The notes: generated by a model not told the origin, from the letters alone. Counted from the stretch's first letter, positions 17,127 through 64,000 are shown. The stretch: DNA of 64,000 bases from Amphiscolops sp. MND2022 (GCA_964187785.1 OZ076419.1:51150001-51214000); one strand, 5' to 3'. Numbers and translations: made by a program.

Positions 17127-20100
17127 ATGGGAGACGAAGAATCAGTTCCCCCTACAGGCCCTACTTTGGGATTTGTCAGTGGGAATGAAACCGTGTTTGG
17201 ATACAGTGATGACGACATGATTCCGTCTGGGTCCCAGGTTGGTAAAATCTTTCTGACTTCCATGGGTAATAGACGTTTGTTTTTGGTGATCAGCCTTTGT
17301 AGTCTTACACGAATACCTGACGCGTCTGAACCAGATTTTGATTTTCAGTAACTCAACCTGTTGCTTCTTCGACTGTTCCCGGAGACAATGCGGAGGGGTC
17401 CTGCCCAGCTACAGTGGAATTGTTTAAGACTTCCACTACTGTCTTGCCCTCTATTTGTGACGTTTTGCCAGCTGTCCGGACTTGTTCCGTTAATGAGACA
17501 TTAACTTCGTGTTAACTGTTCCCGAGCTTGTGACTTCTCACCCTGTTACGGTTAGCAGTTATGCCGTTGTTCCATCGTCAGTTCCTGTTTTAGCTGATTC
17601 TCGGTAAGGGGGTGTTGATACTACCCCTAGCTGTCTACCGATAGCGAGTCTCAATGAGGTCTCAATGAGGTGAGACCGATCCCTCCGCCGAAAAGTAGTC
17701 GGGTGAGTTGATGGGTATATTCTGATCATTATCACTCTAGGGCGAGGTGTAACGTGCAATATTGTTCCTGGTTTGTGTGTTATTAGGGTCGGAAGGGCGT
17801 TCCGCTGGAAAACCGGTCGTGAATTTGTACCACCTCCTTCGAGCCCTCCACCGTTGACGCGAGCACCTGGAGGCTGGAACAGACTGCTCTTGTTGGCGGT
17901 ATGATGTTCAATTCTGAGGATTTGATGCGATTTAGTCAGTGTTTGGTAGATGAGGCGGAGAATCAGACTATCCGGAGCGGTATGTTTTCAATTTAGTTGT
18001 TGTTGATGGGCTTGTTGAATTTGATTATCTTCTGTTCGTTGGGCTTGTCTTTGATTGCTTGTGTTGGATTGTGGGTTTTCCTCTTTCCTCGAAAAAATTG
18101 TATAAGTGTATGTTATAGGTTTCCGTGAACTCAGCGAAAAGGTTGAGAGCCAACTGAACAAGAAAGTGCCTAAAAAGTACAGTAGTCACAAGTTGTTGCA
18201 TCGTCGCATGATGGATCTCCATCCTGCCTATAGAAGCTTCGTGAGTGGGGCAAAGAACGGCCAGGCAACTTCCATTGTCTGGTATGTCGTCGTGATGTGG
18301 CTATGAAGGCGCATGGTTCTGGCGAATTTGGTCGACCTTCCGAATCCGATAAGCATTGGTTCAAAGATGTAACCTATAGGGTGCAAATGGGCTTACCTGT
18401 GCTTAATCGCCTAATGGAGCCTATGGAGTTGACTGAGAGTCAGTTAGCTGAGTATCGAGCTAAGCCTTTTGAAGATCGCGGTGAAGTATATCCTTTTCCT
18501 GAAGACCTTCTGTCAAAGCATTCCCGCGTTGAATCTAAAGTTTCATTCATGACCTTCGTATTATGCCTGGGTGAACTTTTTCGCATTTTCGCAGTGGCGG
18601 GGTTTTACTTCCTTGCGGCGACTGTGGGGGCATTTTTGTTCGTCTTTGGGTGATCGGAAGACTGAATTGGTTCTGAATTTGAGACGTTCGGAGACCGTGG
18701 TATAGTATTTTTCTTTGTTTCCGATTGTTTTACGTTCTATGTTGTTTCAGTTTTGGTTGGTTTGTTAAAATTACGCGCATTGTACTGCTTGTTGGTAATG
18801 GTATTTGTATTTTTAGTAGATTCTGTGCCATCCCTGGCCCCTCGTGTGTTGTGGTTGATGGCCAAGCATCTTACATCCTTCAGAGGGTATAGTTTGCAGT
18901 TCGAGAAGTCGTCGTTCGTGGAGTATTGTTATGTATTTTGTTGGTAAGACAACCATTTGAGAAAGGTGTGTGTTGGTAAAGAGTCTTTGGAACAGCCCGT
19001 CCCCATTGCGGAGCTGGAGCCTCTGTCGCGAGTTGTGTGTAGTCATCCCTCTAAACTGTTGTCGATTGCCAATTCTGGTGCGAGTCCATCATTGGTCCGT
19101 CTTCTGGGAAAAACCAGCGAGGATGGTCGTGGTTTCGTTGTCTATCAGGCCTTCAGTGAAGACATTTTCTTGCAGTGCTTCCGACAGGTCCACCAGGATG
19201 TCTTGCGTTTGGTGGAAGTGGTGACGATTGTCGACTATGTTGTACAGCGTCTAAAGATTGCTTTGTACGAGAAATGGGCGGAGGATAAAACAGTGTTGCG
19301 CAAATATATTCGGCAAGGTTTGGTCAATTTTGGTGACTATCGTACTCTGCTGACTGAGTTGATCGATCTGCTGGGCTGTCGATTCGGCCCTATATTTGCT
19401 GCACTGGGAATCCCGAAGCGGAAGAAAAAGCAGATAGTATAGCATGTTTGGTTGTTATGAATTGGGGTAGGCCTGGTTTGTGAGTGACTTTGGCTTGCTT
19501 TTCGATGAGAGTACCAGACTTGCATCTAACTGCCAATGATATGATTACATATCGATTCGGGCTGTTACGTTTCGTGAACGATACCTGTAAGTTTTGTGTT
19601 GAGACTGGTGGATTGTGTTTGGGTGTTTGATTGTGTCTGCTTTTCTATCTTCTGTTCCGGCTGTTGTTCGTGACTTGCGTTTTGGTCCTGGATTCCTAAG
19701 TTGATTTATAGTTTGTCTGTTTTAGTTTTCAACAACTTTGAGAAGTGACGACAGTGCCGGGAGGATTACGGGTTTCACGATTATGGCGAACTATTTCATT
19801 TCGTCTACTGCCTCTTGATGAAAACTCGGGACATTTCTAGTTTGCATGCTATCCACAATTGGGAAGAGTATAAGGATCACGAAAAGCTTGCTCAATTCCC
19901 TATTGCTCTCATTGAATCTTTCCTTTAGAACTGTGCCTTTGGGCGATCACTGTCTGCTGGTAAAACGACTGAAGTCCGACAATTACGTGGGCGCTGCAGG
20001 GAGTGCCTTGATCGTTTAGTGTTCGTCATTTTGAGTAATTCCGCAGTTTCATCGAGAGTCGCACGCAGCCTGAGCTGTTTTTGTGCCGCGATTATGCTCG

Positions 20101-20870
20101 AAGGGGATGATCACACAGTATTGCGTCTTTTTGCTGAGTTGACTAGTGTGCTAGAGGCTTGTGGACTGTTAGCTTCTGATGAGGCGAAGCCAGCAGTTGA
20201 GCAGTTCGGCAGCTACATCGTGGAGAAGCGGAGACAGCACGATTGTTCCAATACATCTGCTAGTGAGATTGTCCATGTGGTGGAGTACTTACTACGTGAT
20301 TTCAGTCTCCAGGCACGTCATCATGTTTGCCGTTTTTTGAAGCTGTGTTTTGTTGTTATGGGGTGTTCTTGCTGAGTTCGTCGGCAGGTAACCTTTGATG
20401 TGGGACGCAGTTAGATCAATGAAGACGTTTATCAAGACTGCCTCCGAATTGTGCAAAGTTACGTTTTGAGTCCTGGGTTTTGTCCATAGTCAGTTTTTAC
20501 AGAGTCAACGATGGGTGCAGTTCGCGATGCCATTGAGAGTGCTGGGATGTTTTCCGTTACGCCTACTTATAAAGTTTGGAAGGACGTTTGTGATTCCGGA
20601 CTGAAATTGTTTGTGGCTCAGTGTAAGAAGTCATATGATATATATTTCTTGGAACGTCGTAAATCTTATGAGCATCATTATGTGGATTGCAATAGAGCAG
20701 TACTACCAGTTCAGATAAGAAGAGTTCCAGGGGCGATGTTCAAAAGTTGAGATCTGTGAGAAAAACAGCATCTTCTTCGGCAAGGCCCTCGGTAATAGTG
20801 CTGGTAGTCAAAAAAAGAAGAAACCACCGAAAACTGATGATCCGGACGTCGTTCATCGAGTAAAGTGATG
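17127..20870 (+). pseudogene. E1 antisense BED-finger/hAT-like cargo gene, decayed
   Basis: ATG 17127 (MGDEESVPP); FHCLVCRRDVAMKAHGSGEFGR.SESDKHW (18270-18360); MAKHLTSFRGYSLQFEK (18858-18910); FGDYRTLLTELIDLLG; and SRVARSLSCFC..ARHHVCRFLKLC (20019-20375). All are collinear with the intact E3 antisense protein. Confidence 0.85.
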
Positions 20871-36680: not shown

Positions 36681-37789
36681 TTAGTTTTTCTTGCTTTTCA
36701 ATGTCTTGCACCGAACATCTGTTGAACCTCCTTCTTGCTCACCACTGGAGCAACGGTTGAGGAAAACATTAACCCGACTCAGAGTAGGGTCTGGCGACGG
36801 GGAACTGTTGACACTACTACGTCGGCTAACACTAGGAGTGGTGGTGGTAGAGCTAACAGCAGGCTTCTCCAGCCTCAAAACGGCCTTACGATATCCAGCT
36901 TCCAGTTTGCCGACTAACGCGGATCTTCGGGAACTGCTCGCTTTGGAAAAATTCCAGATGGAAAACTTCTTATCAGACAGCAAATCAGTCCCTCGTCCCA
37001 ACAAACGGAAGGCACGACTAATAGCCTTTGAATCTTTAAACAGACTAGAGACATGAGGCACAGTTTGGTAGGAAATTTGCAGGCTAACAACACAAGAATT
37101 AAAAGAGCTCTTATCGGATTCAAGTGTAGGCATTGGTACATCGAATACAGGTGGCACTTCCACCGTCGGTGACAAGCACAAACAAGAATATCTAAACAGT
37201 AACAGAAGTTCCGGCCTCGACTGAATTTCGTAATGAGTAGCTATAAAGGATACCCAATCTTCATACTCAGGAATGTTTTCTGTTCTCATCTTTGAAACGA
37301 ATGACCGGTACTGACTAATCACTCGCACCTTCTCAGTAGAAGAAAGCATCCCAGCAGCCACAAAGTGGGAAGATAGCTTCTCAATAGCTGTGGCGTAAAC
37401 CTCTTCAGGGCTCTCAAAGACTACAGGGGAATCAAATGCGGATAAACCCCTGAGCAAATTAGATTTGACGATCTCGTGGGTCAATAACTGCTTACAAAAA
37501 GATTTGCAGAAGCTAATTGACTGCGCAATAAATTTACTGGGTCGGGATAACTTGCTGGTGAGAACCAAACGATGATAATCTTCATTGAGCACAAATTCAT
37601 CGTTGCTTTTAAAAGGCAATTTAGTAGCATCCAATTCCAGTCCGAGATAAGTATCCCAATCTGAGACGCTACCCAGAATACGATCAGGAAGGATACTCTG
37701 CAGCTGTGAGTAGGTAAACACGGCAAATTGGTTGAATAACCTGAAGCCACTGTCTATCTGTTTTTGGGTCTCTGGGAAGGCTGAATTAT
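36681..37789 (-). CDS. E2 antisense cargo gene, terminal exon (hAT C-terminal-like domain)
   Basis: Acceptor tgtttcag|AT (phase 1), open to stop 36681. SAFPETQKQIDSGFRLFNQF..SNLLRGLSAFD..SRPELLLLFRYSCLCL aligns with E3 exon 5 (TSFVPHLVERRDHGFHIYRQL..SDIVKGMGAFD..TRPHLARIFRLCCLCL). Confidence 0.85.
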
Positions 37790-38048
37790 CTGAAACAACA
37801 TGAGATATTCAAAAAATGAGTGATTAAATACAATAAAATGATCTTCATAACGAGTCAAACCCTACATCAAGAAGAAATAAGTCAGATCAGACCATGACTC
37901 ATGACTGAGCTTACAGTTCGTATTATTCATTGTTATTCTCGCATCAAACAATTGTTACTGCTGGTAACACTGAATACAAGTATTAGACGTCATCCTACGG
38001 TTCGAGGTGAAGCGTATATACGTCACTCCACAAAATTGCTGAGTACAT

Positions 38049-38165
38049 TATGCGTCATTATGCGGTTCAAGGTCTGACGACTATGCGTCACTATGCGGAA
38101 TTGCATAGTGGACTATGCGTCACTATGCGGAATTGCAAATTGATCTATACGTCACTATGCGGAAT
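38049..38165. repeat. Four TATGCGTCA(C/T)TATGCGG-type units at ~32 bp spacing
   Basis: Seen directly; related motifs occur in the E2 LTRs and at 39566-39810. Confidence 0.9.
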
Positions 38166-38247
38166 CGCACGTTAAGCTGATGCGTCTCTTAACAATCAAT
38201 ACAGCGATGTCGTTGACGTGGAAAATAATTGAATAATGCGTTGTAGT

Positions 38248-38941: not shown

Positions 38942-39565
38942 GGCTTTGAAAATTATCTAAGCCTTTTCAATTTTGCAGGCCTGGCCAGTCTCGCAAAAAT
39001 CACAAATTCAAAACAAATTTATCAATCTAAAACCAAAAGAAACGAGTTGGACTAACGGGAAGAAAGTTCAGGCAGTTCTTCAGGGTTCCAAAAATCATCA
39101 CGTTGTAATGGATTGTAGTCCTTCCGTGATCTGCGTTTTTCGCTCTGATCGGCTTCAGAATTCACATCCATGATGAGGCAGTCGTACCAAAACAATTTAG
39201 AACTCCCACGAGAATTATAAAGGCAAAATAAACTCTAATGGGGAGAATACCGTAGTAAGCAATGATATAATCAATCTGGGAAGAAACCAGGGAAGAGAAA
39301 GTTACTGAAAAGTTGACTCTGCAAAGACTAAAATACTTTACTGAAACTGAGACTTAAATGTGACTCTTACAATGAAAATGATCAAGCAGTAAGGCGTGGC
39401 GTAATATAGCAAACAAAGGCAAAAAAGCAAATGAGACAGATTTGCGCAAATGTGCAAAACAAATACTATGATCTGATTGGCTAATTAAATGTCAATCACG
39501 TCTGCCAGCGTGATTGATTGACTCATTATACAACACCAATGCATAGATGTTATTTTGGTTGAAAG

Positions 39566-39810
39566 TATACGGCAGTATGCGGATTGCAGATACAAAGTAT
39601 ACGGCAGTATGCAGATTGCAAAAGAAGAATATGCGGCAGTATGCGGATCGAGTGAAGACGTGTATGCGGCAGTATGCGGATTGTGGAAGAAGAATATGCG
39701 GCAGTATGCGGATCGAATGAAGACGTGTATGCGGCAGTATGCGGACTGTGAAAGAAGAGTATGCGGCAGCATGTGGATTGTGAAAGAAGAGTATGCGGCC
39801 ATATGCGGTT
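39566..39810. repeat. Minisatellite of 8 units (~32-33 bp), core TATGCGGCAGTATGCGG
   Basis: Seen directly. Confidence 0.95.
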
Positions 39811-40643
39811 CTCGCTGCACAACTTTAATAGAATGGATTAATGCAGTTCGTGATTAGAAACGAACAGATGAAGAAGTATTACATAATACTTTGATGAAAA
39901 TTAAAACATTCTCAAAAATAAACACCTGTGTTATTGTTGATGCCTAGTATACATGATACCTAGTCCTATGCTGAATTTAGCTAATTTAGTGGATTCTGAG
40001 CTAAAGGGGTCTTTTAGAAGTTTAGGGACAAAACAATTGAAGTCATTGAACATCATCTGTTAAATCACCAATCCATTCACCCTTTTAAAATGCGGGACTA
40101 GATTTATTACATATTTTTTACTTAAAATTAGTGTTTGAGCAAAATATGTAGTTAAACTAAAGGTGGAATATGTTTCATAACTCTTTTCACCATTTCATAA
40201 AATTGGTCATGAAGAATTAAATAAATTTCCCCCCCCCTAAACTTTTCAAGGAAGCCGCTATGGAAGTTTTTGACAACTTTGATGTCCCGTTGAGTTTTGT
40301 TTGTATATCATTTAATCGCCTAGAAGTTGATGTATTTTCTAGTGATAAATGATGAATCGTTTAAGTGTTAAGCAAAACACCTTTTACGGAAATTGTTTAC
40401 GAATCATCACAAGTGGGTCTCATGACTTGATGTCTAATAAAACCCTTATAAAGGAAAAAGAAGGAATTCAAAAAGCGTGACTCTCAAATTTTTCGCGGGT
40501 TTTGTCAAAAGCAATAGGAGAAAGATCATCAATCACCATATGGTCTTTAACAATTCAAAACTCAGTCGCCTTTTGAAATAACTGATAATTTGTTACCTGA
40601 AGAAACTCACCCATCGATTTCAATCATAACATTTTCTGGCAAA

Positions 40644-41672
40644 ATGAACAAGTTACAATTTAACTTTGAAGAAGACAGCCTTTATTCACCTCTGTCCCCC
40701 GATGTGATCGATATATCCAGTGGTTCCGAAGATGCTTTTTCGATCGCCCCTGGTAACACCCAGCAACTAGAGGAAAAATTCAGAGTAAATCCGGCAGGAA
40801 GTAACTTGAAGGCTGCATTTGTCGGGTCATCTCTGGCGACCTTGTACCCCAACTCAACTGTGCCCCAAGGGAATCATGAAACTACAGTGACAGGAGGCTC
40901 ACAAATAGAAAAGAATCTTATGGAACTGATGAATGAACCCCGGGATGAACCCACAGATTCCCCGGCATCATTCGTCGACAGTGAGTTTGAAGAAAGTAAT
41001 CTGTTTCCCTGGATGGACAACAGAGGCTCGACCCAGGACACAAATCACTATGGTCGGCCATGCGTTAGAGTAATGCCAGTTCTAAGGGAAAACCAGGACG
41101 AGAGTGGAGTTCTGCCGACTCCAATGTCCGAACAAACACCCAATGGAGGCCCCAATCCATCAGTTATGCAGAACACACTAACAAACGACACCATGGAATA
41201 TGAACCGCATGATGTCGGGGCTCAGTTGCAGATTCCGGTTTCGAGGAACATGCAGGGGTTCAGCCTGTCCCCAATGTTGTTCCCAATGCAGATAACGGAC
41301 ACAGCCCAAGAAATGCACCGAGCGCCGTTGATTATGCAGCAAACAGCGCAGATTGGTTTCCCTTTCAATACAGTTCACAGTTCTAATGTGTTACTAATTC
41401 CGGCCAGTGAGAGACAGGGCATCCGACTTCTGCCGACAGTTATGCCGAATGTGGCGGGGTATTGTGAACTATGCGGCAAATGCTTTGACCAAGTTGCATT
41501 GGAGACCCTCGGCCAATACTTGGTTGCCACTGAGTATGAAAGTGAGACTGTTAAAGAAAGAAAAATGAGGTCAAAAGCCTTTATCCACGGGTTCCAGGCA
41601 GCCTTGTTCCTTTTTAAAAATGCGGGACTGTCGCATCCCCCAAGATGCGATGGTTCCGGAGTGCAACTCTAG
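40644..41672 (+). CDS. E2 ORF3: sense accessory protein (342 aa from the first ATG), stop inside the 3' LTR
   Basis: Long open ORF; acidic/Pro/Met-rich body with C-terminal GYCELCGKCFDQVALE..FQAALFLFKNAGLSHPPRCDG. The last 44 nt lie within the LTR (starts 41629). Confidence 0.75.
   Translation: MNKLQFNFEEDSLYSPLSPDVIDISSGSEDAFSIAPGNTQQLEEKFRVNPAGSNLKAAFVGSSLATLYPNSTVPQGNHETTVTGGSQIEKNLMELMNEPRDEPTDSPASFVDSEFEESNLFPWMDNRGSTQDTNHYGRPCVRVMPVLRENQDESGVLPTPMSEQTPNGGPNPSVMQNTLTNDTMEYEPHDVGAQLQIPVSRNMQGFSLSPMLFPMQITDTAQEMHRAPLIMQQTAQIGFPFNTVHSSNVLLIPASERQGIRLLPTVMPNVAGYCELCGKCFDQVALETLGQYLVATEYESETVKERKMRSKAFIHGFQAALFLFKNAGLSHPPRCDGSGVQL
41616..41627 (+). promoter_or_regulatory. Weak polypurine-tract candidate aaaaatgcggga
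   Basis: Purine-rich and 1 nt upstream of the 3' LTR TG, but contains pyrimidines. Confidence 0.35.
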
Positions 41673-51593: not shown

Positions 51594-53092
51594 TGTCGCA
51601 GGCGGCCGCCTGTGACGGAATATTATACCAAGTTGGACCCGAAGACGATGACACTAATCCCGGACCGGGTGTTTTGCCTATTTGAGAGAAAAACTCCGCA
51701 ATACGTTAATTATTTAGTTAACAATCTCCTCATGCATTTTAGTTCATTCATTCTTATTCATCTCTACATGTAAATATGAAGTCTTATTAATGTGACTCAA
51801 GGTCATTTTGACGGCATGAATAATTATATTTTGGTGCAATCTTATGTAAATTAGTTGTTACATCGCATTAATAATAATAATGTGAACTAGTACCAAAAGG
51901 TGCAAAACGCTGTACAAGCAGTTAATTTGATTGACGTTAATAATAACAATAGAAAGCAAGATGACTATTCAAGTGAATGGAAACGCGTTCAACTGGTATG
52001 CTGCTGCCGTCTAGTTGATGCGTAGTCACTTCGCTTCTAACCAATCACGGCGCTACATTTAGTTATAGTTCAATGCCGTCATGCGGACGTTAGGTCCAAT
52101 TAGTTAACGCATGTAGTGTTAAATCTGTAGTTGCATGAAAATCACCGTTAGCATGTACCTGTTATTAACCAGTATGTTGCTTCTATTTATAGGACCTATG
52201 ACGTGTAGTCATATGTCACCTCCGTTGCTATATTTAGAATTGTGACGTAATAGTTATTTTTAATAATGATGTCATTACTATTTTTACCCAATGACACCCT
52301 AAATATTGAGTGTCATGCTGTAGTTGCTATATATATGCAAAATTCCAGTAGGGGATTCATTCATTGTGATAACCTCAATATAAACCGTTCTGATATACAC
52401 TTTCGATTCAACAATCTATTATTGAACAAAACCATCTTTTGATATGCCTTCAACTAGAAGACAAAAGGCGAAAGAGAAACGTTCAAGACAATCTGACATA
52501 ATGTCTGATATTGAAAATCTAGATGTGATGCTAGGAAATTACTCAAACAGCGAAATTAGGGACCAAAACACGGTAGATCAAATAGAAATTGACCCTGAGT
52601 CAAGTAGACGGCAACAAGGTTTCAGTCATGAAGAAAGCAACTATAGATCCCTTTTGAATACAAATTTGAGTGAGAATAGTGAAATTACAGTAGAAACTAG
52701 CAGAGCAATTAGTTCAGAAATTTCTTCACAGATGTCAAGGAAATTGGAAGAAATGAAATCTGACCTAAATTCCCATATTATGGAGGTAATAAACTCTGCT
52801 ATTGATGAAAAAATACTACCGAGCATTGAAAATGTCATAGTAAATCACAGGGAGTGTAAAAACGCAAAATTGGACCTTCGGTCAGATGGACGGCATCCGA
52901 GTAGAAACGTCCCTATGGACGAGAATTTGGACCTTGGGTCATATGGACGGCATAAAATTAAATTTGGCCAACAGGTCCAGGACTCAAGAGAGAATTTTCC
53001 TAGACTAAGCAAGACAACAAATAACCATTCAAACCATCAAATGGAATGTTCGGGTGATTCTGAACAGAGTGAAAATGATGAAGGTTATGACA
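51594..53092 (+). repeat. E3 5' LTR (1499 bp)
   Basis: Starts TGTCGCAGGC (same TGTCGCA start and LS....CDG coding remnant as the E2 LTR) and ends GGTTATGACA before the PBS. The partner LTR is outside the window. Confidence 0.75.
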
Positions 53093-54240
53093 TGGTGACA
53101 GGAGCCAACCTTACTCCACATGTAGTCCCTGAATTTCTGACCGGACGTCCCACGCAGTCCAGAAATAAAATTCCCCATCAACAATGCGTCAACGATGACA
53201 CATTAGATACCACTCTCCCGGCACAAATTCCCTCAAACCCTATCAATGACCGGGAAATGCAGCCCCAAACACCTTTAGACCCCATAAACAGACTTGCCGA
53301 TGTCATTATGGGAATGAACAACAAATCATCAGCACAAACACTGATGGTACGACCAGTCAATACTGCCACACTCACATTTGACGGCAAATCTGAAAAATTT
53401 GAACTGTTTGAAGACCTTTTTCACACGGTGATAAAGATGCAACCCGAGATGACGGAAGCAATGAAAATTAATCACTTTCATTCACTGTTGCGCAAAAATG
53501 CCCTGCAAACCTTCCGCAACATCAGTTCAGCAAATAGACAAACCTTAGAAGACGTACTAGCTGTGTTTCGTAGGAAATATGTCAAACCTGAATCCCAGGC
53601 AACTGCCAAACATAAATGGCACAAATTGGTATTTGACCCAAACACGATGAAATTGCCCGATTTTCTCGAGGAACTCAATCAGGGCGCCGAAAAAGCCTTT
53701 GGCGAGCACGCACAAGCCATGATTGACAGTCTGCTATACGCAAAACTCCCACCGAAACTCAAACGTTCAGTCAACATGGCGCGATTAGAGAATGCCACCT
53801 ATGAAGAAATTGTCACTCATCTCGAACGAGAACTGGAGTTGAACGGACTTGAGGAAGGTGATGACATTCCCGTTCCCACAATGTCTACAGCCCCGACAGC
53901 CACACGACCGGGTCAAGGACTCCTTTCATCAGGCATTGACCCAGGAATAACTTGCAACTACTGCAAAAAACCTGGACATGTCAAAGACGATTGCCGAAAA
54001 CTAAAACGAAAGGAAGAGCAAAAACGCAATGAAGGCTCGAGTACCAAAAAAGAGTACCCAAAGTGCCCGACTTGTGACAAAACCAATCACCCGGCGGAGA
54101 GATGTTGGAAAGGCGCTGGAGCCCACCTCAAGCCCAAAAACCTCAAATTGGATAGTCCAAAGGATGACGACACGACCAGTAGTCGTGATGACCCTACCAA
54201 TAAACCCACAACTTCTATCCTTAAAAACTCAAAAAACTAG
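52444..54240 (+). CDS. gag: E3 Gag (598 aa), initiating inside the LTR
   Basis: SEKFELFEDLFHTVIKMQP..FRRKYVKPES; knuckles CNYCKKPGHVKDDC and CPTCDKTNHPAERC. Confidence 0.96.
   Translation: MPSTRRQKAKEKRSRQSDIMSDIENLDVMLGNYSNSEIRDQNTVDQIEIDPESSRRQQGFSHEESNYRSLLNTNLSENSEITVETSRAISSEISSQMSRKLEEMKSDLNSHIMEVINSAIDEKILPSIENVIVNHRECKNAKLDLRSDGRHPSRNVPMDENLDLGSYGRHKIKFGQQVQDSRENFPRLSKTTNNHSNHQMECSGDSEQSENDEGYDMVTGANLTPHVVPEFLTGRPTQSRNKIPHQQCVNDDTLDTTLPAQIPSNPINDREMQPQTPLDPINRLADVIMGMNNKSSAQTLMVRPVNTATLTFDGKSEKFELFEDLFHTVIKMQPEMTEAMKINHFHSLLRKNALQTFRNISSANRQTLEDVLAVFRRKYVKPESQATAKHKWHKLVFDPNTMKLPDFLEELNQGAEKAFGEHAQAMIDSLLYAKLPPKLKRSVNMARLENATYEEIVTHLERELELNGLEEGDDIPVPTMSTAPTATRPGQGLLSSGIDPGITCNYCKKPGHVKDDCRKLKRKEEQKRNEGSSTKKEYPKCPTCDKTNHPAERCWKGAGAHLKPKNLKLDSPKDDDTTSSRDDPTNKPTTSILKNSKN
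53093..53106 (+). promoter_or_regulatory. E3 primer-binding site TGGTGACAGGAGCC
   Basis: Identical to the E2 PBS; follows ..TATGACA. Confidence 0.88.
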
Positions 54241-57200
54241 ATTTGCCACGACTCCATATTAATGAAAAATTACGTATCAGACAATATATAATATCTGATC
54301 CTCCTACTATATATTATACTGAATATCACTCTTCAATTAAAGAAACTTCATCAGCTGACTGGCAGCAGCAGGTGAAGCATTTGCCTACTCACTTACACAA
54401 ACCGGACCTTCAGTCCGACAGACAGCACTCTAATACTACGACCATTCGCCCCCTTCCCCTAATTGATAACTACAACCCATATTATCCTGACCCGGACTTC
54501 GGATTCGACCCCTATTGGGACATTCAAATCTACAACCAACATCAGCTACATTTCTACAAAAACTTTACCAAAAACATTGCAGATATCGAACATGATCAAC
54601 CCCATATTGATCAGATGCTGAACACAAAACTATCCTCGGCCTCTGTTGACCCCTGGCAAAATGTGTGGATTAACACCAATTCACCAATCCAGGAGGAAAC
54701 AACCGAGCAACTTCCACACAATGGACCTTTGGTCACATTGACGGCAACAGTGGAAGAACGCTTTGTGAATACGCTGATCTCACGAAACGGTGAACCTGAC
54801 TACGTCCCGTTGACGACCAACTTGGGACTCAAATACAAAAGACGGATGCTCTACTTCCCCATGGATTTTGGCGAACTAACTTTAGATGGCCTTGTAGACA
54901 CGGGAGCCCTATCTAGCGCTATCCCAGAAGCTGATCTACGTAAAATCCGATTGTTAGCCCCTCAGTCAATAATTAAAGAGGGCCCGGCACCCAACTTCCA
55001 GATTATGGTAGCCAATGGACAGCTGGAGACTCCAAAGAGCACTGTTGAACTCAAATTCGAAGTCGGGGACATCGATTTCCATGAGATCTTCATCGTTATG
55101 GAAAAACTCACAAGTCCGTTAATTGGTCTCTCGTTCCTGCAACGGAACAATACCATACTGGACATGCGTCAAGGAGTTTTAAACTTCCCTTTCTTCTCCA
55201 TGCAATTGAAAACAGCTGACCACAAGTACACTAATGTCATGGAACCTATCTGTGCACGGGAGGACATAACTATTCCCCCCAACGACAGACATATGGTTTC
55301 CATGTTCTCACAACTATATGACGACACAAACGTCACTGGAATTATTCAACCGAGCAACGACCTTGCAGAAGATGGTGATATAACCTTCTGCGCCGCTCTA
55401 GTCACGCTGACCCAAGGTCAGGTATCAATCCATGTCAATAATTTCACTGACCAACCGTACACCCTCAAAAGAGGTGCGCACATTGCCAATTTCTCTGTCC
55501 TCACACCAGAGCAGATGAAATACGTCAAACCCATTGATCCTGTGACCACTTGGCACCTTTTAAAGGATAACCCGGAAAATGCTGCCTATTATGCCAGTAG
55601 CCTGATCAAATCTCCGAAAACTAGTGATGATAGTGAGAACTATTGGTTCCCTACTCCAGAAGAACCAGGAGATCCCCAAACTCACACACCAATACAACAA
55701 AGAATCCTTAGGGAACTACGAAATCTCCAAGATTTAGAGAAACTCAACCCTCTCGATGACCTCGAATCGCGAAAGCAATTCCTTGCTAACTTCGACTGGA
55801 CAGACTCGACGCTAAATCCAGCCGAAATTGCCCAAATTGAAGAATTACTTGTTGAATTTCACGATATTTTCGCACGACACCGCTTTGATATAGGTATGAA
55901 CGAGGACTTCAAGGTCACTTTGACCCCTAAAGATGACTCTCCTGCCTATAGTCAAAGCTTACCTACTCCTATCAACCTCAAAGAAGATATCCTTGTAGAA
56001 CTAGCACTACTACATCGATATGGGATTATAACAACTCTCCCATTTTCCAAATATGCAAGTCCCATCTTTGCCCAGAAAAAACCTAACGGCAAACTTCGAC
56101 TCCTGGTTGACCTCCGAAAGATCAACAACCTGATTTCTGACGATTACATCAACAACAACCATCCTGTCAGCACACTAACGGATGCTGCGCAGCACATGGC
56201 AGGTAAACGATTATTTTGCAAACTTGATTGTTCTCAAGCATACCACTGCCTTCAAATGGCTGACCAGAGGTCAATCGAGATGCTGGCATTCAATTTTGCC
56301 AGCAGAACCTTTGCCTATCGTAGACTTGCCCAAGGTCTAAGCAGAGCGCTGTCCGCATTTTCGAGCTTTATGCGCGAATATCTGGATAAAGTGATAAAAG
56401 CTGACCAATGCGCTCAGTACGTAGACGATATTGGGATAGCTGCAAACGACGCTACTCAGCTCATCAACAACCTTCGAGCAACGTTCCAGTGCATCAGGAC
56501 CGCTGGCCTCAAACTAACGATGCACAAGTGCCATTTCGGAGCCAAGGAAATCGACTTCCTGGGACGTACCATCACTCCTGAAGGGGTGCGACCACAACGA
56601 CCCAGGGTCCAGAATTTCTTGGAAAAGACCAAATTCCCTAAATCCAAGAAAGCCCTTCAAAGATACTTGGGATTCCTGAACTACTACCGTAACTACATTC
56701 CTAGACTCTCAGAAAAACTCACACCGTTTTTCAAGTTATTGAAAAGTGATGCCAAAGTCATGGTGACACCCGATCTGTTAGAAAAATTCACCGAGATCAA
56801 CAAAGCTCTTGACCGATGTTGTGAACTGGCGCTCAAACAACCTCTACCCGACAAACAGATAGCCCTGATGACAGACGCTAGTTTTTCGGCAGCAGGTTAT
56901 GCAGTTCTCATCGAGGACGATCCGATGGAAAAATATACTTCGACGCGAAAAGCCTTCGCACCTGTAGCATATGGATCCAAGACCTTTAGTCCAGCCCAAC
57001 TGAAGATGTCCATTTATGCCAAAGAATTCCTAGCAATATTCTTTGCATTCAAAGAGTTTGGCCATATCTTCTGGGGGACCCCGAAACCGGTGATAATACT
57101 AACAGACAACAAGTCAGTCACTCGCTTTTTTCAAACAAAAATCATTCCACCCACATTGTGGAACGCGTGTGACTACGTTATGCAATTCAGTTTCACAATA

Positions 57201-59420
57201 GCCCATATACCTGGCAAAAACAATACTGCCGCTGACTACTTGTCACGTCTAGAAATCTGTCCCAAAGAAAAACTCATACTCCGGATACGAGAAGATATTT
57301 CCACCACACCAATCGAACTCAACGTCCAATCAGCGGGAGTTACTGAAGAGGAACAGATCTTCTATACGGACGATGATGAAGAAACAGAAGAACAAATCTG
57401 GAAACGCAAACAAGACGCCAGGTCAAACCCAATGAATCAACCTCCTGATATTTTGTTAGATCATCTTAGCACTCATGATAATACACAATTCCAAACTCAA
57501 AATATACAAAAACTGGCAAAACCAACCACCATGGCTATAGAACAACAGAACGATCTTATCTTACATCAATTACGACTCAAACTGCAAAAAGAAGAATACT
57601 CTGAAACCATCTTACAGCAAGATTCGCGCTACCGACATTACTGCCGTCAAATTGACCGTCTGTCCGTACATGATGACATCATTTTCAGAGACTACTACGA
57701 TGAAACAGGCAGTGTCCAATTCCGCCAGGCATTATTACCGAAACATCTAGTCACAGAATTACTTCAATCACTACATGGTTCCGCGAACAAACACCCGGGA
57801 ATCTCAAAAATGCTGCACGAAATTCGACGAAAATACTACTTTCCTGGAATTGCCAAAACTGTCAAAAAGTGGGTCCAAGGGTGCGAAATTTGTATAAAAG
57901 ACAAAAGAATCAATAATGCATCCATAACACCTGAATTACTCAATTTACCTGAATGGGATTTTGGCCCAGAAGATGCCTTACAAATTGACATTCTGCCCAA
58001 CTTACCCCCCAGTGGAGGTTATGAAAATGTCATAACGGCTCTGGACGTGTTTTCGAGATATCTTTTTGCCTACCCAGTAACGGACGCTTCGGCCATCAAT
58101 ACGGCAAAGGTCATTATTGATATCATGACAAAACATTCCTACTTGCCGACTACACTCATCACCGACAAAGGCACTGCCTTTACGTCCAAACTACTAGAAG
58201 AAATTACCAAAATTTTAGGAATTCACCTTCGGTGCGCGACCACAAAGCATCCGCAGACGATAGGCAAACTAGAACGCACTCATGCCAGCCTCAAGGGCAA
58301 CCTTAAAATGGCATCAGGTGAATACAGGCGTCAATGGCACAAATATCTCCCATTGGCCGTCCTTAATTATAACACGACCTATCATTCAAGTCTTGGATGC
58401 GAACCCACCCGAATTTTTCACGGAAGAGTACCCTATAATATCTTAGACCATCGGTTAGGATTAAACCCTAACCCAAAGATCACTCCAACGACTGATTTTG
58501 CTGAAGAATTTCAAAGACGCACGCAAATATTAATTGATCAAACAAAGAAAAACATCATGCAATCATATTTAAAGTACAAGGAATATTATGACCGAAAGGC
58601 TAAAGCAGCTCCTCTACAACAAGGAGATTTTTGCTTCATTTTACAACCTCTAGCTGACCATCAAGGCTCTAAAATTCCTTTTCGTGAATTTCGTTGGATC
58701 GGACCGCACGTCATTGAAAAAGTTTTACCTAACGACAACTATATTGTTCGTAAACTTAGTACTAACAAAACGCAGCTATTACACCGAATACGCCTTAGAA
58801 AATACACTCCAAATACTACCCCACCAGACATTCGTCCCGAAGGAAATTTACAAGCAGACGATGAAATTATTATTCCACAGGATGATCTGTACATCATTTC
58901 ATGGGAAACCAATTTTGACGATTTCGCTCCTAATTCTGAAAATCGGACTGTTACTAATGAACTCCCTACCTATTCCGATGAACAGGATGCCATAATCACA
59001 GATTTGGACCTACGGTCCACGCGACGGCAAACAAATACTGACGCCGCTCACGCTGATGATACTGATAGTGACTCACGTTCAAACGAAATAAACGAAGCGG
59101 ACCTTCGGTCCGCGCGACGGCAATCAAATACTGAGGCTGATAATACGGAGCAGTACTCAAGAAATGCACACAACGAAGACCGTCAGTCCGCTAGACGGCA
59201 ACAAAGGACCGAATTTGAAAACGATGAATTGACAAATCAGGACCTACCTAGAGATGAAAATTCAGAATTTTCAACTTCTGGGGGGAACGATACAACCGTG
59301 CCCGATGTATTAATTGAAGAAACTGATGATTGTGTTGTAGAAAATGAAAGTCCTAGGGGAGGGAGATATAACTTACGCCCCAATCCTACCCCCAACTTTA
59401 CTGACGAATACAGATACTAG
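54225..59420 (+). CDS. pol: E3 Pol: protease, dUTPase-like insert, RT, RNase H, integrase (GPY/F)
   Basis: Uninterrupted 1725+ aa ORF: DTG at 54897, YVDD at 56418, TDASF..EFLA..TDNKS..ADYLS, HHCC (LHGSANKHPG..CEIC), QIDILP..ITDKG..LERT, WIGPH. Confidence 0.98.
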   Translation, partial: KLKKLDLPRLHINEKLRIRQYIISDPPTIYYTEYHSSIKETSSADWQQQVKHLPTHLHKPDLQSDRQHSNTTTIRPLPLIDNYNPYYPDPDFGFDPYWDIQIYNQHQLHFYKNFTKNIADIEHDQPHIDQMLNTKLSSASVDPWQNVWINTNSPIQEETTEQLPHNGPLVTLTATVEERFVNTLISRNGEPDYVPLTTNLGLKYKRRMLYFPMDFGELTLDGLVDTGALSSAIPEADLRKIRLLAPQSIIKEGPAPNFQIMVANGQLETPKSTVELKFEVGDIDFHEIFIVMEKLTSPLIGLSFLQRNNTILDMRQGVLNFPFFSMQLKTADHKYTNVMEPICAREDITIPPNDRHMVSMFSQLYDDTNVTGIIQPSNDLAEDGDITFCAALVTLTQGQVSIHVNNFTDQPYTLKRGAHIANFSVLTPEQMKYVKPIDPVTTWHLLKDNPENAAYYASSLIKSPKTSDDSENYWFPTPEEPGDPQTHTPIQQRILRELRNLQDLEKLNPLDDLESRKQFLANFDWTDSTLNPAEIAQIEELLVEFHDIFARHRFDIGMNEDFKVTLTPKDDSPAYSQSLPTPINLKEDILVELALLHRYGIITTLPFSKYASPIFAQKKPNGKLRLLVDLRKINNLISDDYINNNHPVSTLTDAAQHMAGKRLFCKLDCSQAYHCLQMADQRSIEMLAFNFASRTFAYRRLAQGLSRALSAFSSFMREYLDKVIKADQCAQYVDDIGIAANDATQLINNLRATFQCIRTAGLKLTMHKCHFGAKEIDFLGRTITPEGVRPQRPRVQNFLEKTKFPKSKKALQRYLGFLNYYRNYIPRLSEKLTPFFKLLKSDAKVMVTPDLLEKFTEINKALDRCCELALKQPLPDKQIALMTDASFSAAGYAVLIEDDPMEKYTSTRKAFAPVAYGSKTFSPAQLKMSIYAKEFLAIFFAFKEFGHIFWGTPKPVIILTDNKSVTRFFQTKIIPPTLWNACDYVMQFSFTIAHIPGKNNTAADYLSRLEICPKEKLILRIREDISTTPIELNVQSAGVTEEEQIFYTDDDEETEEQIWKRKQDARSNPMNQPPDILLDHLSTHDNTQFQTQNIQKLAKPTTMAIEQQNDLILHQLRLKLQKEEYSETILQQDSRYRHYCRQIDRLSVHDDIIFRDYYDETGSVQFRQALLPKHLVTELLQSLHGSANKHPGISKMLHEIRRKYYFPGIAKTVKKWVQGCEICIKDKRINNASITPELLNLPEWDFGPEDALQIDILPNLPPSGGYENVITALDVFSRYLFAYPVTDASAINTAKVIIDIMTKHSYLPTTLITDKGTAFTSKLLEEITKILGIHLRCATTKHPQTIGKLERTHASLKGNLKMASGEYRRQWHKYLPLAVLNYNTTYHSSLGCEPTRIFHGRVPYNILDHRLGLNPNPKITPTTDFAEEFQRRTQILIDQTKKNIMQSYLKYKEYYDRKAKAAPLQQGDFCFILQPLADHQGSKIPFREFRWIGPHVIEKVLPNDNYIVRKLSTNKTQLLHRIRLRKYTPNTTPPDIRPEGNLQADDEIIIPQDDLYIISWETNFDDFAPNSENRTVTNELPTYSDEQDAIITDLDLRSTRRQTNTDAAHADDTDSDSRSNEINEADLRSARRQSNTEADNTEQYSRNAHNEDRQSARRQQRTEFENDELTNQDLPRDENSEFSTSGGNDTTVPDVLIEETDDCVVENESPRGGRYNLRPNPTPNFTDEYRY
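54231..54237 (+). promoter_or_regulatory. E3 -1 frameshift slippery site A AAA AAC
   Basis: Canonical heptamer directly before the gag TAG; the pol frame (-1) is open from 54225. Confidence 0.82.
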
Positions 59421-59647
59421 TTAGAACATGTAAATTCACTGGCCCGACTCAACACCTTTTGACTCTCCAATTATCTTTTTATGGGCCTCGACTGACTTGT
59501 AGTCCACAATAACAGATCAAACACAGGCATCATAACGACACAACTGTACAAACAGACTGCAAATAATGATAAAATAAAAAATTCAAGACTGACAGACAAA
59601 CGAAAGATACATAAATACAACTAAAAACAAATGTACATATAGTACAA

Positions 59648-60777
59648 TTAAGTGTCTTTAACAGATGAACTAGAAGGCAATTCGCTATCCGATGGCCGCT
59701 TGACAGGAGAGTTCTTGGTACTGGAGGAAGGAAGACTTTTCGAGCTTTTGGTGCATCTCAGTCCCTTGAATCGTAGCCTTCTAGTGTCTTTTTTCTTCCC
59801 CTTCAATGCAGGCTGTAAAGCAGTCCGAATTTCCGCCCAGTTGAATAAATCCAAGCCGTCCCAGGGACAGTAGGTATCAGTGAAAGCAGTACCACCAAAC
59901 GTAGGCTCAAAAGCAAGGAAACCCTTGATTGATGCAGGAGTGGTAAGAGCTTCGATGCTGCGCCCAACATTTGTGAAGTAAGACTGGACGGGCAAAATTG
60001 AATCCACTAGCTGGCATTTGGGGTCATCGGTACGCACAGACCCAAATTTCACTGTAGGCATGGGGGTATAATCCTGGTCCAAGCAAAGGCAACAGAGTCT
60101 AAATATCCGTGCCAAATGGGGACGCGTCAACAGAGTAACATGGCCCGAAATGAAGGACACTGCGTCAATGATAATGACTCTGGGTTGATCGAGGTCAGGA
60201 AACTCTTTACGGAGCTCATCAAGGAACGATAGGTATTCCTCGGTGTAGATTGACTCGTCGTCAGCTTGACAATACCCTCGTGAATGAAAACTGCGGAAGA
60301 GCTGTTTGAAGCAGTATAAAGCCTGACTCAAGGGAGAACGGAAAATTACATCTAGATCAAAGGCACCCATACCCTTCACGATGTCCGAAGTTAATTGCAA
60401 GTTGCTCTGTGCGGCTTGAAATAAATACGCAACGTAACTGCGGCCCAACCGTCCAAACTCCTCTTTATTGGCTTTTATTAATTTGGGCAAATTGGCTCTA
60501 CTAGCTTTCTTGTCGCTCAGCTCCTTCTCAGCTTTTACTTTGCAGGCAGTATTGAGACGCCGCTCCAGTTTAGATCTAACAATGAAATCGGTCACGGATA
60601 AAGCCTGGGCATCTGAAATTGACACATTGAGAATTCCAGTCAAGTCGGATTCTAATGGCAAACTCTTGGACTTGATACAGCGTCTACCAAGTTTAAACAA
60701 GTACTGGCAAAGTTGGCGGTAGATGTGGAACCCATGGTCACGCCGCTCAACCAGGTGTGGAACGAAACTGGTAGTAT
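59648..60777 (-). CDS. E3 antisense cargo gene exon 5
   Basis: Acceptor ttgcttgtttag|AT (phase 1); in frame with ORF 59648-60700 to the stop. Confidence 0.85.
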
Positions 60778-60847
60778 CTAAACAAGCAAAGTATAAAGTA
60801 AAGTTAGCACTATCGCATGAGCTGACTAGCCATCAAGTCTTACTAAC

Positions 60848-60929
60848 AATCTCTGACTAAGCGATGAAACAATTCTAGTCGGCAAAGGAACATCTCGTCC
60901 TGTATCATGGCCCGCTCCAAGTTTTGGGG
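60848..60929 (-). CDS. E3 antisense cargo gene exon 4
   Basis: tgttgttttag|CCC..GAT T|GTTAGT; reads PQNLERAMIQDEMFLCRLELFHRLVRD; bridges phase 0 to phase 1. Confidence 0.65.
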
Positions 60930-61000
60930 CTAAAACAACAAGTAATACCGTCAAAATGGAGAAGGTTGGACTGAAGGTCATTTCGACGGCAGGAACTTAC

Positions 61001-61135
61001 TTGCTTGCGAACACCCATCATTTCATGCGGAGGAGCATGCGTGTTCAAGTACTCGAGTACTTTAGGCCAATTGGCAAGCAGTTCTTGACACAGAGTTGGG
61101 AGTGTAGCAAGTTCAAGTTGACAAGTGCGCACAGC
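61001..61135 (-). CDS. E3 antisense cargo gene exon 3
   Basis: caattttccag|GCT..AAG CAA|GTAAGT; reads AVRTCQLELATLPTLCQELLANWPKVLEYL. Confidence 0.8.
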
Positions 61136-61208
61136 CTGGAAAATTGAATTTATTGAGCCACATGAAAATTTTAATCCTAGGAATATATCTCTAAAGAAGG
61201 ATTATAAC

Positions 61209-61694
61209 CTTGGCGAGGACAGGGGTCATTAGCGTCCAGTCACAGTCCAGACATCCACCCAAGAAGACAATCAGATACCTCAACACTGAGTGAAAGTCAA
61301 TGCGCCCGAAAACACTATAGCTCTCCCTGTGCATCAGTCGGGCTATAGAGAAGTCCTCGAACCTGAGAGGGCGCTGGAGTCCATATTTGGAGTACGGGGA
61401 ATTATCGACCAACTGTATAGTTTCAAGAGTACTTCCAGAACAGCATACGAGATTTGGACTTGTCGAGAGCGCAGCCATGACATGACTAATCAGGCTCAAT
61501 TCTGCTGAGGACTGGCTTAAAACTCTTCCAGTTCTTTTGAGGTAAACTCGGCACAGTTCGCCATTTCTCCAGAAACGTATGAAGACAAGAAGGAACACCC
61601 CCTGCTTCACAAACTCCAAGGAGTATTCTCCTGAGGCAACCACATGTTCAGCAATGTCGCGTATGACTTGGAGGAAAAGGTGATGGAAGAGTGC
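61209..61694 (-). CDS. E3 antisense cargo gene exon 2
   Basis: attgctttcag|GCA..GCC AAG|GTTATA; reads ALFHHLFLQVIRDIAEHVVASGEYSLEFVKQG..RIDFHSVLRYL. Confidence 0.82.
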
Positions 61695-61787
61695 CTGAAA
61701 GCAATACGAAAATTAAGTGTTGTACCAAGGCATAACTGCACAACTTATGTAGACACAAGGTCAATGGGACCAGAAAAGGTTACTTAC

Positions 61788-63914
61788 CGACAAACGTTCC
61801 TTGCTCCAGTCGAAGTCAGTAAAAAGTGATTGGTGATTCACTATGACGCCGACATCACGCCAGAAGTTTCTGAGGGTACTGATGTCACCGAAACTCCGGA
61901 GATAATTGCCAAGAACTGATATTTGAATCTTAGCACGACTATCGGATGAAGATGCCATGTAGTCCGTCCCACGGATATAATTTTCGTAAAAAGGCAACTT
62001 CTCTCCAATGTCCACTAACGGTTCGTCAATAAAGTGCTCTAACTCTTGCTCAAGCTGATAAGGTGTAAGCAACTTTCCATCTCTCCCTCGGACATGGTGT
62101 CTGACTGTACCGGTAACTGGGTCTTCAACCGAGAGGTGCTCATACCTCCACCGTTGGTCTTTCCGGAGGTGCCGTTCGGATTGATGGTGGCGTAAAATTT
62201 CTCTAGCGCCTCTACCGTAGATCGAAATATTGCCCTTACAGATCTGGCAATAAAATTTGTAAGGGTTCCAGCGAGGGTCTACTGGGCCAGACACAAAAGT
62301 TTTGGTCCACTCCATGCCCTTGAAGTAGGACTCCTTCATTATTTTGCACCCTCTGGGGACTTGATGTTTGCTCGTCCCAACTTTCCGTGCAGGAGTTTTC
62401 CGTGCCTTTTTTGATTTGGCAGGTTTAGTCCTTTCAGCAATGGCTTCTGCTTTCAACCCAGCTAGGGTTTGGGCTCCGGGACTTTCCAACTGGTTAGTTC
62501 GCTCTTGGGACCCTGGGTCACTCCGACTGCATCCAGGTGGTCCTTTTGGAGGAGGAGTAACTGGCTGACTTTCCAAATCAGAATGTTCATAGGAGTAACC
62601 GAGGCTGGAGAAATTATCGTCGCTCCTCAACGCTCCACTAGTATCACTTCCGTGGCCCGACAGCAGGCCCGAACGTGAACCGACACTACTAGCTCTACTC
62701 CCTGGTCTTCGGGTCTTGGTAACGGAATCAGGGGTTGGATGGGAACCTCCAAGACTGAGTCTACTGGCCTGCTGGATTAGGCTCTCCATGGTCTTTAGTG
62801 AAGTTTTGACGGCTTCATCCGCCACGGCTTTCAGGATACTACACACTTGGCCCTCATTTAGTGCTAAAGTCTGATGACCTGCAGGCAAATGCACTGGACT
62901 GGAAGATTCAAAGAATTCCTTGATTAGGGCACGGCTGCTAGCACCCAATCGCGGCTCCTGGGGAGCTGTTTCAGGGAAGTCTACGGAAGTATTGCTGGCG
63001 GAATCGAAGACTCTGAACACATTAGTACTCGCTGGATCGCACAAGGCTTGAGCAACAGTTGACCCGACTGCCCCTTCTGAGTCTTGACCAGTGCTACTGG
63101 AAATCCTAGCAGGGGTTCCTTGTTTGCCTCTGTGTTCGTAACTGGAGGTTTGGACATCATCTGTGAACTCACCTTCACTCTCAGAAACTGACGGACACTC
63201 AGTCCCTTGCGCAGCACCAAACTCTCCTCGTGTCTCATTGATGCTGAGTTTCAGGGTTTTCGCTTCAGGCGGACCGTACCTGGACCGTAGGTTACTCTTC
63301 AACGGTACTTCTGGGGAATCCAGGAAAGCAACTCTAGGATAGGGATCTGTATCCATGTCTTCCAAGCCTGCTTCGCCCTGCTGGGGAGCCAATTCCATTG
63401 TTGCACTTTCACTGAACTTTTCAGAGTTGCCGTCGGATTGACCATGGGTCCCCGCCTCTGAAGAACAGCCCAATTGTCGCCACTTCCTGGCAATATACTC
63501 GCCACAACTCTCATCAGTACTGCTACTCTCAGCTTGTAAAGTGCCGGACATAAAAAGAGGAGTGGTACAAGCTTCGGACGGGGTTTTAGAAGGCCCCCCT
63601 AACTCTTGTTGGGAATTGTTTTGGGCCAAGTTCTCATCTGACACATCCCCCACCGTTGCTTCAGCCTGTGGATTATCGTGGGAAATCTCAACTGCTTCTT
63701 CATGCACAGTGGACCCGGATTCTCCTATGACGGAACCACGGATTGAGGCATTCACAGTAGGCTGATTCTCAGTAGTTGCTATTGCAGTAACAAATGAATC
63801 GTTACTGTCCATCTTTTCATCATCAGCTCCACGCCGGGGAGGTTGGCCATTTGATTCATTGCCTAAACGGAATGAAATAAATAAACGCGGTTCACTTCCA
63901 GAATATGAATCCAT
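61788..63914 (-). CDS. E3 antisense cargo gene exon 1 (disordered N-terminus + BED-type zinc finger); start could be the ATG at 63812
   Basis: 709 open codons ending TCG|GTAAGT; FYCQICKGNISIYGRGAREILRHHQSERH. ATG 63914 sits just after a GTAAG and before a ccgtttag acceptor, so it may be intronic. Confidence 0.88.
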
Positions 63915-64000
63915 CTTACCGCTTCAAATCAAATTCTTCCGGAAGTTCATTTGACACAATGTTCATGCTGACGACAAAACATTTCACGATGGAGGAAGTA

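Follow-up and report, generated by a model that had tools for sequence, protein, structure and literature searches.

We analysed a 64,000-nucleotide (nt) stretch of the Amphiscolops sp. MND2022 genome (GCA_964187785.1 OZ076419.1:51150001-51214000; hereafter the window), in which the elements named E1, E2 and E3 lie, and found that the long terminal repeat (LTR) retrotransposon E3 carries a five-exon gene on the strand opposite to its gag and pol genes. By comparison with further copies, this gene was confirmed to be real and intact and not a chance chain of open reading frames (ORFs). It is a genuine accessory gene of a Ty3/Gypsy-type family, carried as part of the retrotransposed unit, and its product represents a new, undescribed protein family. 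To the explanation as a whole, in which the accessory gene encodes a factor acting in trans in the nucleus, we assign a probability of roughly 0.6.

The five-exon antisense gene

Members of the family were traced at least to two analyses of the European Nucleotide Archive (ENA), to a metagenome sample of the Joint Genome Institute (JGI) and to one MGnify protein. The copies L001, L002, L003, L006, L007 and L008 lie on contigs of ENA analysis ERZ25074608, L004 and L009 come from ENA analysis ERZ26696514, and L005 is a 4-kb JGI metagenome contig (sample 3300000422) whose flanks are too short to judge the position of the gene. The exons and introns of the E3 gene are as follows:

61788..63914, minus strand: exon 1, 709 codons; acidic Ser-rich N-terminus, Lys-rich stretch, zinc finger and about 125 conserved residues; placed by ORF and splice check
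61695..61787, minus strand: intron 1, 93 nt, GTAAGT..CAG; absent in the L009 and L004 lineages
61209..61694, minus strand: exon 2, 162 codons; conserved domain (38 homologues, alignment A2, AlphaFold2)
61136..61208, minus strand: intron 2, 73 nt, GT..AG; position interrupted in every lineage examined
61001..61135, minus strand: exon 3, 45 codons; conserved Trp (LLANW)
60930..61000, minus strand: intron 3, 71 nt, GT..AG; absent in L004, where the ORF is continuous
60848..60929, minus strand: exon 4, 82 nt
60778..60847, minus strand: intron 4, 70 nt, GT..AG; absent in L004 and L009
59648..60777, minus strand: exon 5, 376 codons plus stop; all-helical conserved domain and basic Ser/Lys tail (85 homologues)

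Joined together, the exons form a single frame of 3960 nt, equal to 1319 codons with one terminal stop, which opens with an ATG at 63914; three codons before this ATG lies an in-frame stop. All four introns run from GT to AG and have pyrimidine-rich 3' ends. The original prediction, made from the window sequence, had given the same five exons, the same intron lengths (93, 73, 71 and 70 nt) and the same 1319-amino-acid (aa) frame, and this model was borne out by the joining of the exons and by the L001 copy. In L001, the same five exons, with GT-AG boundaries at every intron, encode an intact frame of 1301 aa at about 30% DNA divergence from E3. The lengths of exons 2-5 are identical in the two copies, while the L001 introns differ in length (94, 68, 69 and 76 nt), and the alignment of the two contains no gap column over the 1833 positions of exons 2-5 versus 30 gap columns in the four introns. 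Differences between E3 and L001 in exons 2-5 amount to 0.18, 0.07 and 0.57 at the first, second and third codon positions, respectively.

Furthermore, several of the predicted junctions are crossed by uninterrupted reading frames in distant copies. The exon 1/2 junction is bridged without a gap by continuous ORFs of L009 (440 aa) and L004 (300 aa), and both the exon 3/4 and the exon 4/5 junctions are bridged without a gap by a 419-aa ORF of L004 (P0204). In P0310, intron 1 is read in frame as an insert of 30 aa. Together, the exon match with L001, the distribution of gaps, the codon-position bias and the intron-less ORFs across the junctions confirm at the sequence level that the spliced gene is real. 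It was also observed that introns 1, 3 and 4 of the E3 gene are missing from the L004 (L004:7593-11260) and L009 (L009:822-3963) copies, a difference that may be read as either gain or loss.

Place in the element and evolution of the gene

The carrier element, the spacer and the upstream block of E3, and the homologous features of E1 and E2, were located in the window as follows:

51594..53092, plus strand: E3 5' LTR, TGTCGCA...GACA; the 3' portion of E3 lies beyond the window end
53093-53110, plus strand: E3 primer binding site TGGTGACAGGAGCCAACC, directly after the 5' LTR
52444..54240, plus strand: E3 gag ORF, intact, 598 aa; opens within the 5' LTR
54243..59420, plus strand: E3 pol, intact, 1725 aa; protease, dUTPase, reverse transcriptase (RT), RNase H and integrase (Pfam)
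59421..59647, no strand: tail-to-tail spacer of 227 nt between the pol stop and the antisense stop
63915..64000, minus strand: conserved non-coding block ahead of the ATG, truncated by the window end; contains ACTTCCGGAAG
18234..20468, plus strand: diverged collinear homologue in E1 (segments 18234-18650, 18948-19439 and 19761-20468), antisense to E1 pol
36684..37790, minus strand: homologue in E2, C-terminal domain only; 346-aa ORF, 46% identical to the L005 copy
40590..41672, plus strand: 'ORF4' of E2, between the antisense gene start and the 3' LTR and extending into that LTR; its E3 counterpart falls outside the window

The Pfam domains of pol follow the order protease, RT, RNase H and integrase that defines Ty3/Gypsy elements, with the dUTPase added after the protease, and the LTRs are direct repeats with TG..CA ends, accompanied by the shared primer binding site TGGTGACAGGAGCCAACC and, in E2 and L001, by target-site duplications. 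E2 spans 28968-43148, with LTRs at 28968-30526 and 41628-43148 (TGTCGCA...CACA) and a 5-base-pair (bp) duplication, ATATC; the L001 element has the same build as E2, with the duplication TCCCC. Since LTRs, primer binding site and 5-bp duplications enclose the gene, the gene lies within the integrated LTR unit. An arrangement of tandem elements sharing one LTR was also considered and dropped, the repeats being true LTRs of about 1.5 kb with ..ACA ends, a primer binding site and 5-bp duplications.

The gene stands in the same place throughout the family. In all 11 copies with visible flanks (E1, E2, E3, L001, L002, L003, L004, L006, L007, L008 and L009), it is placed tail to tail beside pol, between pol and the 3' LTR and antisense to gag-pol, and the spacer that separates it from pol, 227 nt in E3, measures about 215-260 nt in L001, L006, L007 and L009. 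The view of the original prediction that the gene is a family trait of the LTR element is thus upheld: all 11 copies, drawn from at least two assemblies, share this position. Its claim of collinear homologues in both E1 and E2 holds for E1, where three collinear segments antisense to pol were matched by profile (E 2e-9 and 1e-6) and by tblastn (5e-7), and fails in part for E2, which retains the C-terminal domain only. Beyond these copies, relatives at 90% clustering numbered 85 ORFs for exon 5, 38 for exon 2 and 139 for exon 1, in clusters of up to 137 members, and the exon 5 profile retrieved 822 clusters at 50% identity from a search of 1.84 billion cluster representatives. None of the 150 matches listed exceeds 420 aa or carries an annotation; all are fragments of ORFs, with no spliced model of full length among them.

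Comparison of E3 with L001 gave proportions of non-synonymous differences (pN) of 0.08-0.12 for the structured core and 0.26 for the N-terminal part, with the proportion of synonymous differences (pS) saturated at about 0.8. Non-synonymous change, which the original prediction had singled out as a check, thus lies far below synonymous change, a strong indication of purifying selection on the antisense gene between intact lineages. In L006 and L007, which belong to the E3 subfamily, the antisense gene is frameshifted and the pol genes are broken as well. Selection acts through the element: intact antisense genes go with intact gag-pol, and the two decay jointly in dead copies. Because both genes are broken together in L006 and L007, the antisense gene lives and dies with the element, unlike a host-domesticated gene.

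The history of the gene is partly separate from that of gag-pol. In sliding comparisons, E3 and L001 are 95-99% identical over gag-pol and 59-76% identical over the antisense gene, whereas the pattern is reversed between E3 and both L006 and L007, with 75-91% identity over gag-pol and 89-95% over the antisense gene. The change-points of the E3 mosaic lie near the LTR end and near the pol stop. These reversed patterns argue that the accessory gene is an exchangeable module recombining between lineages, and such exchange could occur by template switching during reverse transcription of co-packaged RNAs. The E3 LTR is also unlike that of L001 (57-64% identity).

Protein features and origin

Two features of the protein were located within exon 1:

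62349..62429, minus strand: basic Lys/Arg-rich stretch, aa 496-522, just before the finger; a basic stretch is also present in aligned homologues
62169..62309, minus strand: zinc finger module, W536..F540..C556-x2-C559-x16-H576-x5-H582

As had been predicted, a disordered N-terminus is followed by a Cys2-His2 finger. Residues 1-495 are acidic (isoelectric point, pI, 4.65), Ser-rich, fast-evolving and disordered, and residues 496-535 form a segment of pI 10.6 with 25% Lys, whose basic stretch resembles a nuclear localisation signal. The part before the finger varies in length, from about 95 residues in L009 to about 535 in E3. The Trp, the Phe, both Cys and both His of the finger are invariant in a 14-sequence alignment including the distant L004 and L009. 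The H-x4-H spacing first proposed has to be corrected: the spacing is C-x2-C-x16-H-x5-H, in which the invariant His is the first of an 'HH' pair. The finger is succeeded by about 125 conserved residues, the exon 2 domain, the part encoded by exons 3-4, the helical domain of exon 5, which bears the motif RPHLxRIFRLxCLCLD, and the basic Ser/Lys tail; the conserved core comprises about 750 aa. Exons 2 and 5 were modelled separately with AlphaFold2. The exon 5 model contains helices only, at a mean predicted local distance difference test (pLDDT) score of 64, and the exon 2 model, of low confidence (pLDDT 52), consists of a helix, three strands, a helix, a strand and a helix. From this model, the exon 2 domain may be an RNase H-like fold lacking a conserved acidic triad.

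The original prediction had seen in this layout a catalytically dead hAT transposase, with a BED finger, an RNase H-like core, a helical insertion and a C-terminal domain, that was adopted as a DNA-binding accessory protein. This proposal concerns where the gene came from and is compatible with the accessory-gene explanation. The succession of a finger preceded by W and F, about 125 aa, a strand-helix domain, a helical stretch of about 300 residues and, at the C-terminus, a conserved motif does fit the hAT layout, and the structured part of about 770 aa is within what we take to be the usual size of a hAT transposase. Profile searches gave a different picture. Pfam scans were run on every exon piece, on 73 aligned family members and on ORFs of four distant copies, with matches reported up to E 10 (up to E 1 for the C-terminal ORFs of L008 and L009), and zf-BED (PF02892), DUF4371, DUF4413 and Dimer_Tnp_hAT were matched in none of them. 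The hAT dimerisation domain (PF05699) and DUF4371/DUF4413 were likewise absent from 24 members of A1, from the exon pieces and from the C-terminal ORFs of L004, L005, L008 and L009. The W-x3-F...C-x2-C-x16-H-x5-H pattern of the finger is compatible with BED, but Pfam zf-BED never matched it; the finger was hit, and only weakly, by generic C2H2 models, among them zf-C2H2_ZN292, which matched 19 of 30 members with a best E of 5e-5 that falls short of the Pfam cutoff, and its PDB profile search returned only sub-significant C2H2 fingers of BCL11A. The BED assignment was accordingly not confirmed. Sequence and profile searches against PDB found nothing significant and no transposase.

With Foldseek, the exon 5 model had no structural match in PDB or BFVD (best PDB E 2.6). 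All matches of the exon 2 model were sub-significant (E 0.02-0.1, best 0.019); they include RNase H-like folds, namely retroviral integrase cores, RNase HI and actin-like ATPases, as well as UvrC, and these may be counted for the hAT proposal. Among the top 50 matches of either model, no entry carries the annotation of a hAT transposase (Hermes, for example). Alignment A2 contains no conserved acidic triad, and no acidic residue is kept after the fourth strand, so that any nuclease activity looks lost. Of the claim that the catalytic landmarks are degenerate, the missing triad stands; hAT membership was not confirmed. At the site that we take to correspond to the hAT 'DESTD' block, ENTGE occurs in L004, EDTVE in L009 and VKQGV in E3, which is a lead and no test. 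Moreover, the terminal inverted repeats of an autonomous hAT element were not found around the L001 cassette, and the unit is bounded by LTRs with 5-bp duplications in place of the 8-bp duplications of such elements. Hence hAT ancestry was not confirmed by Pfam, PDB profile or Foldseek searches, and we regard an origin from a dead hAT transposase as tentative and lean against it. A descent of the core from a DDE-type (RNase H-fold) transposase in general is held to be possible at the same low level. Slightly more doubtful still is the composite proposal that a class I element lineage stably adopted a dead hAT-like class II transposase as its spliced antisense accessory gene, trades this gene between lineages, and uses the product to regulate itself from the nucleus or to counter silencing. 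Should the transposase ancestry prove true, a class I element would here have recruited a class II protein.

A passenger, meaning a host gene that an ancestral element took up a single time and that is of no use to it, would account for the loss of most of the gene from E2, whose LTRs are about 97% identical, and for a protein without known function, and gene capture by LTR elements is documented (PMC11963269). Captured passengers, however, are usually restricted to one or a few copies (PMC11963269). Here, position and orientation are constant across lineages that are only 23-29% identical (L004, L005 and L009), purifying selection between active lineages is strong, and the module has been retained through recombination. 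The listed homologues are short unnamed ORFs with no source annotation, and all 11 copies with readable flanks lie inside elements. We consider a passenger improbable. Hardly credible is the reading of the cassette as a class II transposon nested in the element, or as a host gene that elements merely flank; in its favour stands only the motif-based transposase resemblance of the original prediction. No terminal inverted repeats surround the cassette (L001 flanks examined), the gene lies within LTR units bounded by 5-bp duplications, 11 of 11 copies agree in its position and in its distance to pol, and its mosaic history is common to the element; the gene is not a nested DNA transposon.

Proposed role, known systems and surrounding sequence

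For the accessory gene, we propose the following mode of action. The element begins with a 5' LTR of about 1.5 kb, followed by gag and pol; next come the antisense gene, which converges on pol, a conserved block between genes, a fourth ORF on the sense strand and, last, the 3' LTR. Splicing cannot remove introns from the genomic RNA when they lie antisense to it, and every new copy therefore inherits them. Transcription of the antisense gene would probably start from an internal promoter in the conserved block directly upstream of the ATG. This block is 84.5% identical between E3 and L001, against 66% in exon 1, and is kept from about -170 to -1 in L001, L003, L006 and L007, which makes it a candidate internal promoter or 5' untranslated region. 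After four splicing events, the transcript would be translated into a protein of about 1300 aa. Most likely, this protein would act in the nucleus as a trans-acting factor that binds nucleic acid or chromatin and raises the fitness of the element; it could control the transcription of the element or counter host silencing, by analogy with what has been proposed for plant and retroviral antisense proteins.

Several points weigh against this proposal. Promoter, splicing and translation are all read from conservation, and nuclear localisation is read from the basic stretch. No domain of known activity beyond a generic C2H2-like finger was found in Pfam and PDB searches, and the 227-nt spacer past the stop codon contains no canonical AATAAA. 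Moreover, E2 keeps only the C-terminal third of the gene, with LTRs about 97% identical overall and 99-100% identical over the first 560 nt. Because E2 has lost most of the gene despite near-identical LTRs, the gene is not needed in cis for every copy.

Extra genes of LTR retrotransposons show how such elements gain regulatory functions toward retrovirus-like complexity. The closest known systems are the antisense extra ORFs (aORF-3R) of the plant Retand and Grande elements. In plant Ty3/Gypsy elements, aORF-3R are represented by Grande GENE23, Retand ORF4/TRP28 and RIRE2 (PMC7264820, PMC11963269). As in the present family, their place is between pol and the 3' LTR on the strand opposite to gag-pol, most copies in different lineages carry them, and a nuclear or DNA-binding role is suspected for them, with an own promoter in Grande GENE23 (PMC7264820, PMC11963269). 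The position by which aORF-3R are recognised, an ORF between pol and the 3' LTR that is antisense and shared by copies, was found in 11 of 11 copies here. Retand also carries tandem repeats in its long pol-to-3'LTR region, comparable to an array of E2 at 39561-39808. Different from the plant genes, the gene described here encodes a far larger protein (about 1300 aa) from five exons with four conserved introns, is followed by a further sense ORF, and probably resides in an animal host. There is also no sequence relation to the plant proteins, Transposase_28/TRP28 (PF04195) being matched in none of the Pfam scans.

HBZ of human T-cell leukaemia virus type 1 (HTLV-1) is a small basic leucine zipper (bZIP) protein transcribed from the 3' LTR. 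HBZ and APH-2 of HTLV-2 are likewise spliced antisense nuclear regulatory proteins of an LTR retroelement (PMC11963269). The E3 product, by contrast, is a zinc-finger protein of 1319 aa without bZIP, is likely expressed from an internal promoter and is not homologous to HBZ. The precedents named by the original prediction, plant Tat/Retand elements and HTLV-1 HBZ, are thus apt in position, orientation and suspected nuclear role, and unlike the present gene in sequence, size and introns. To hAT relatives (Hermes and proteins of the ZBED, ZNF862 and GTF2IRD2 type), the likeness may extend to the domain order, and the absence of a catalytic triad is shared with domesticated members; the differences are that profile and structure searches detected no defining domain and that the gene, neither free-standing nor itself a transposon, travels in a class I element. 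In animals, CERV of the Caenorhabditis elegans Gypsy element Cer1 is also a nuclear accessory protein of a Ty3/Gypsy element, acting in genomic RNA export, but it is reportedly encoded on the sense strand and produced via splicing of the genomic transcript, and it is unrelated in sequence (PMC10309623). In the open-access literature, no spliced antisense zinc-finger gene was found for any Gypsy element of an animal, which is no proof of novelty.

Most documented cases of antisense extra ORFs come from plants (Retand, Grande and RIRE2) and from deltaretroviruses, and their functions are largely unsettled. What is new in the present case is a Gypsy carrier that is probably of an animal, a large multi-intron antisense gene showing clear signs of purifying selection, an undescribed protein family (at least 822 clusters at 50% identity), introns that vary between lineages, and the separate exchange of gag-pol and accessory modules. 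The family offers a tractable system for asking what accessory antisense genes do for the element.

Further observations concern the carrier. The LTRs are unusually long (about 1.5 kb), begin with TGTCGCA and end with ..ACA, and their start is palindrome-like (TGTCGCA...TGCGA/TGTGA). In E3, the gag ORF starts about 650 nt before the LTR end, and in E2 about 570 nt before it; the primer binding site TGGTGACAGGAGCCAACC consequently lies inside the gag reading frame. A weak DUF1759 match was obtained for the L001 equivalent of gag, and the dUTPase (PF00692, E 5.8e-6, above the Pfam cutoff) occupies window positions 55248-55493, or pol aa 336-417. The fourth sense ORF, of 270-360 aa, was found at 40590-41672 (plus strand) in the window, at L001:4669-5493 (minus strand) and at L003:5828-6706 (minus strand). 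It is directed away from the antisense gene, from which about 1.5 kb separates it in L001 and L007, and is acidic, with a C-x2-C-G-K motif and its final 30 or so codons entering the LTR. Its copies in L001 and L003 are homologous (40% identity, E 1e-41), as is the C-terminus in E2 (E 5e-9), and no Pfam domain was found in it. In E2, the tandem array at 39561-39808, with periods of 32, 65 and 97 nt and the motif GTATGCGGCA, occupies the stretch of the pol-to-3'LTR region in which one would look for the 5' part of the antisense gene.

The host is probably metazoan, judging from the intron style and from a fragment of a Fringe-domain (PF02434) gene near the L008 copy, at L008:1089-1436 (minus strand). 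Rfam and tRNA scans of the window were empty, and its other ORFs contained no Pfam domain. The region 2001-14000 (36% GC) has a GC skew of -0.3 to -0.5 across about 12 kb and is without a long ORF bearing a Pfam domain, with only a weak Tc3-type helix-turn-helix match at 10925-11341. Related LTR-like repeats lie at 14757-16090, 26644-28860 and 49674-51587. E1, on the minus strand, is bracketed by the first two, which share about 86% identity, and E2 starts about 100 nt past the second. The third, about 70% identical to the other two, is located directly upstream of E3 and looks like an E1-like fragment or a solo LTR.

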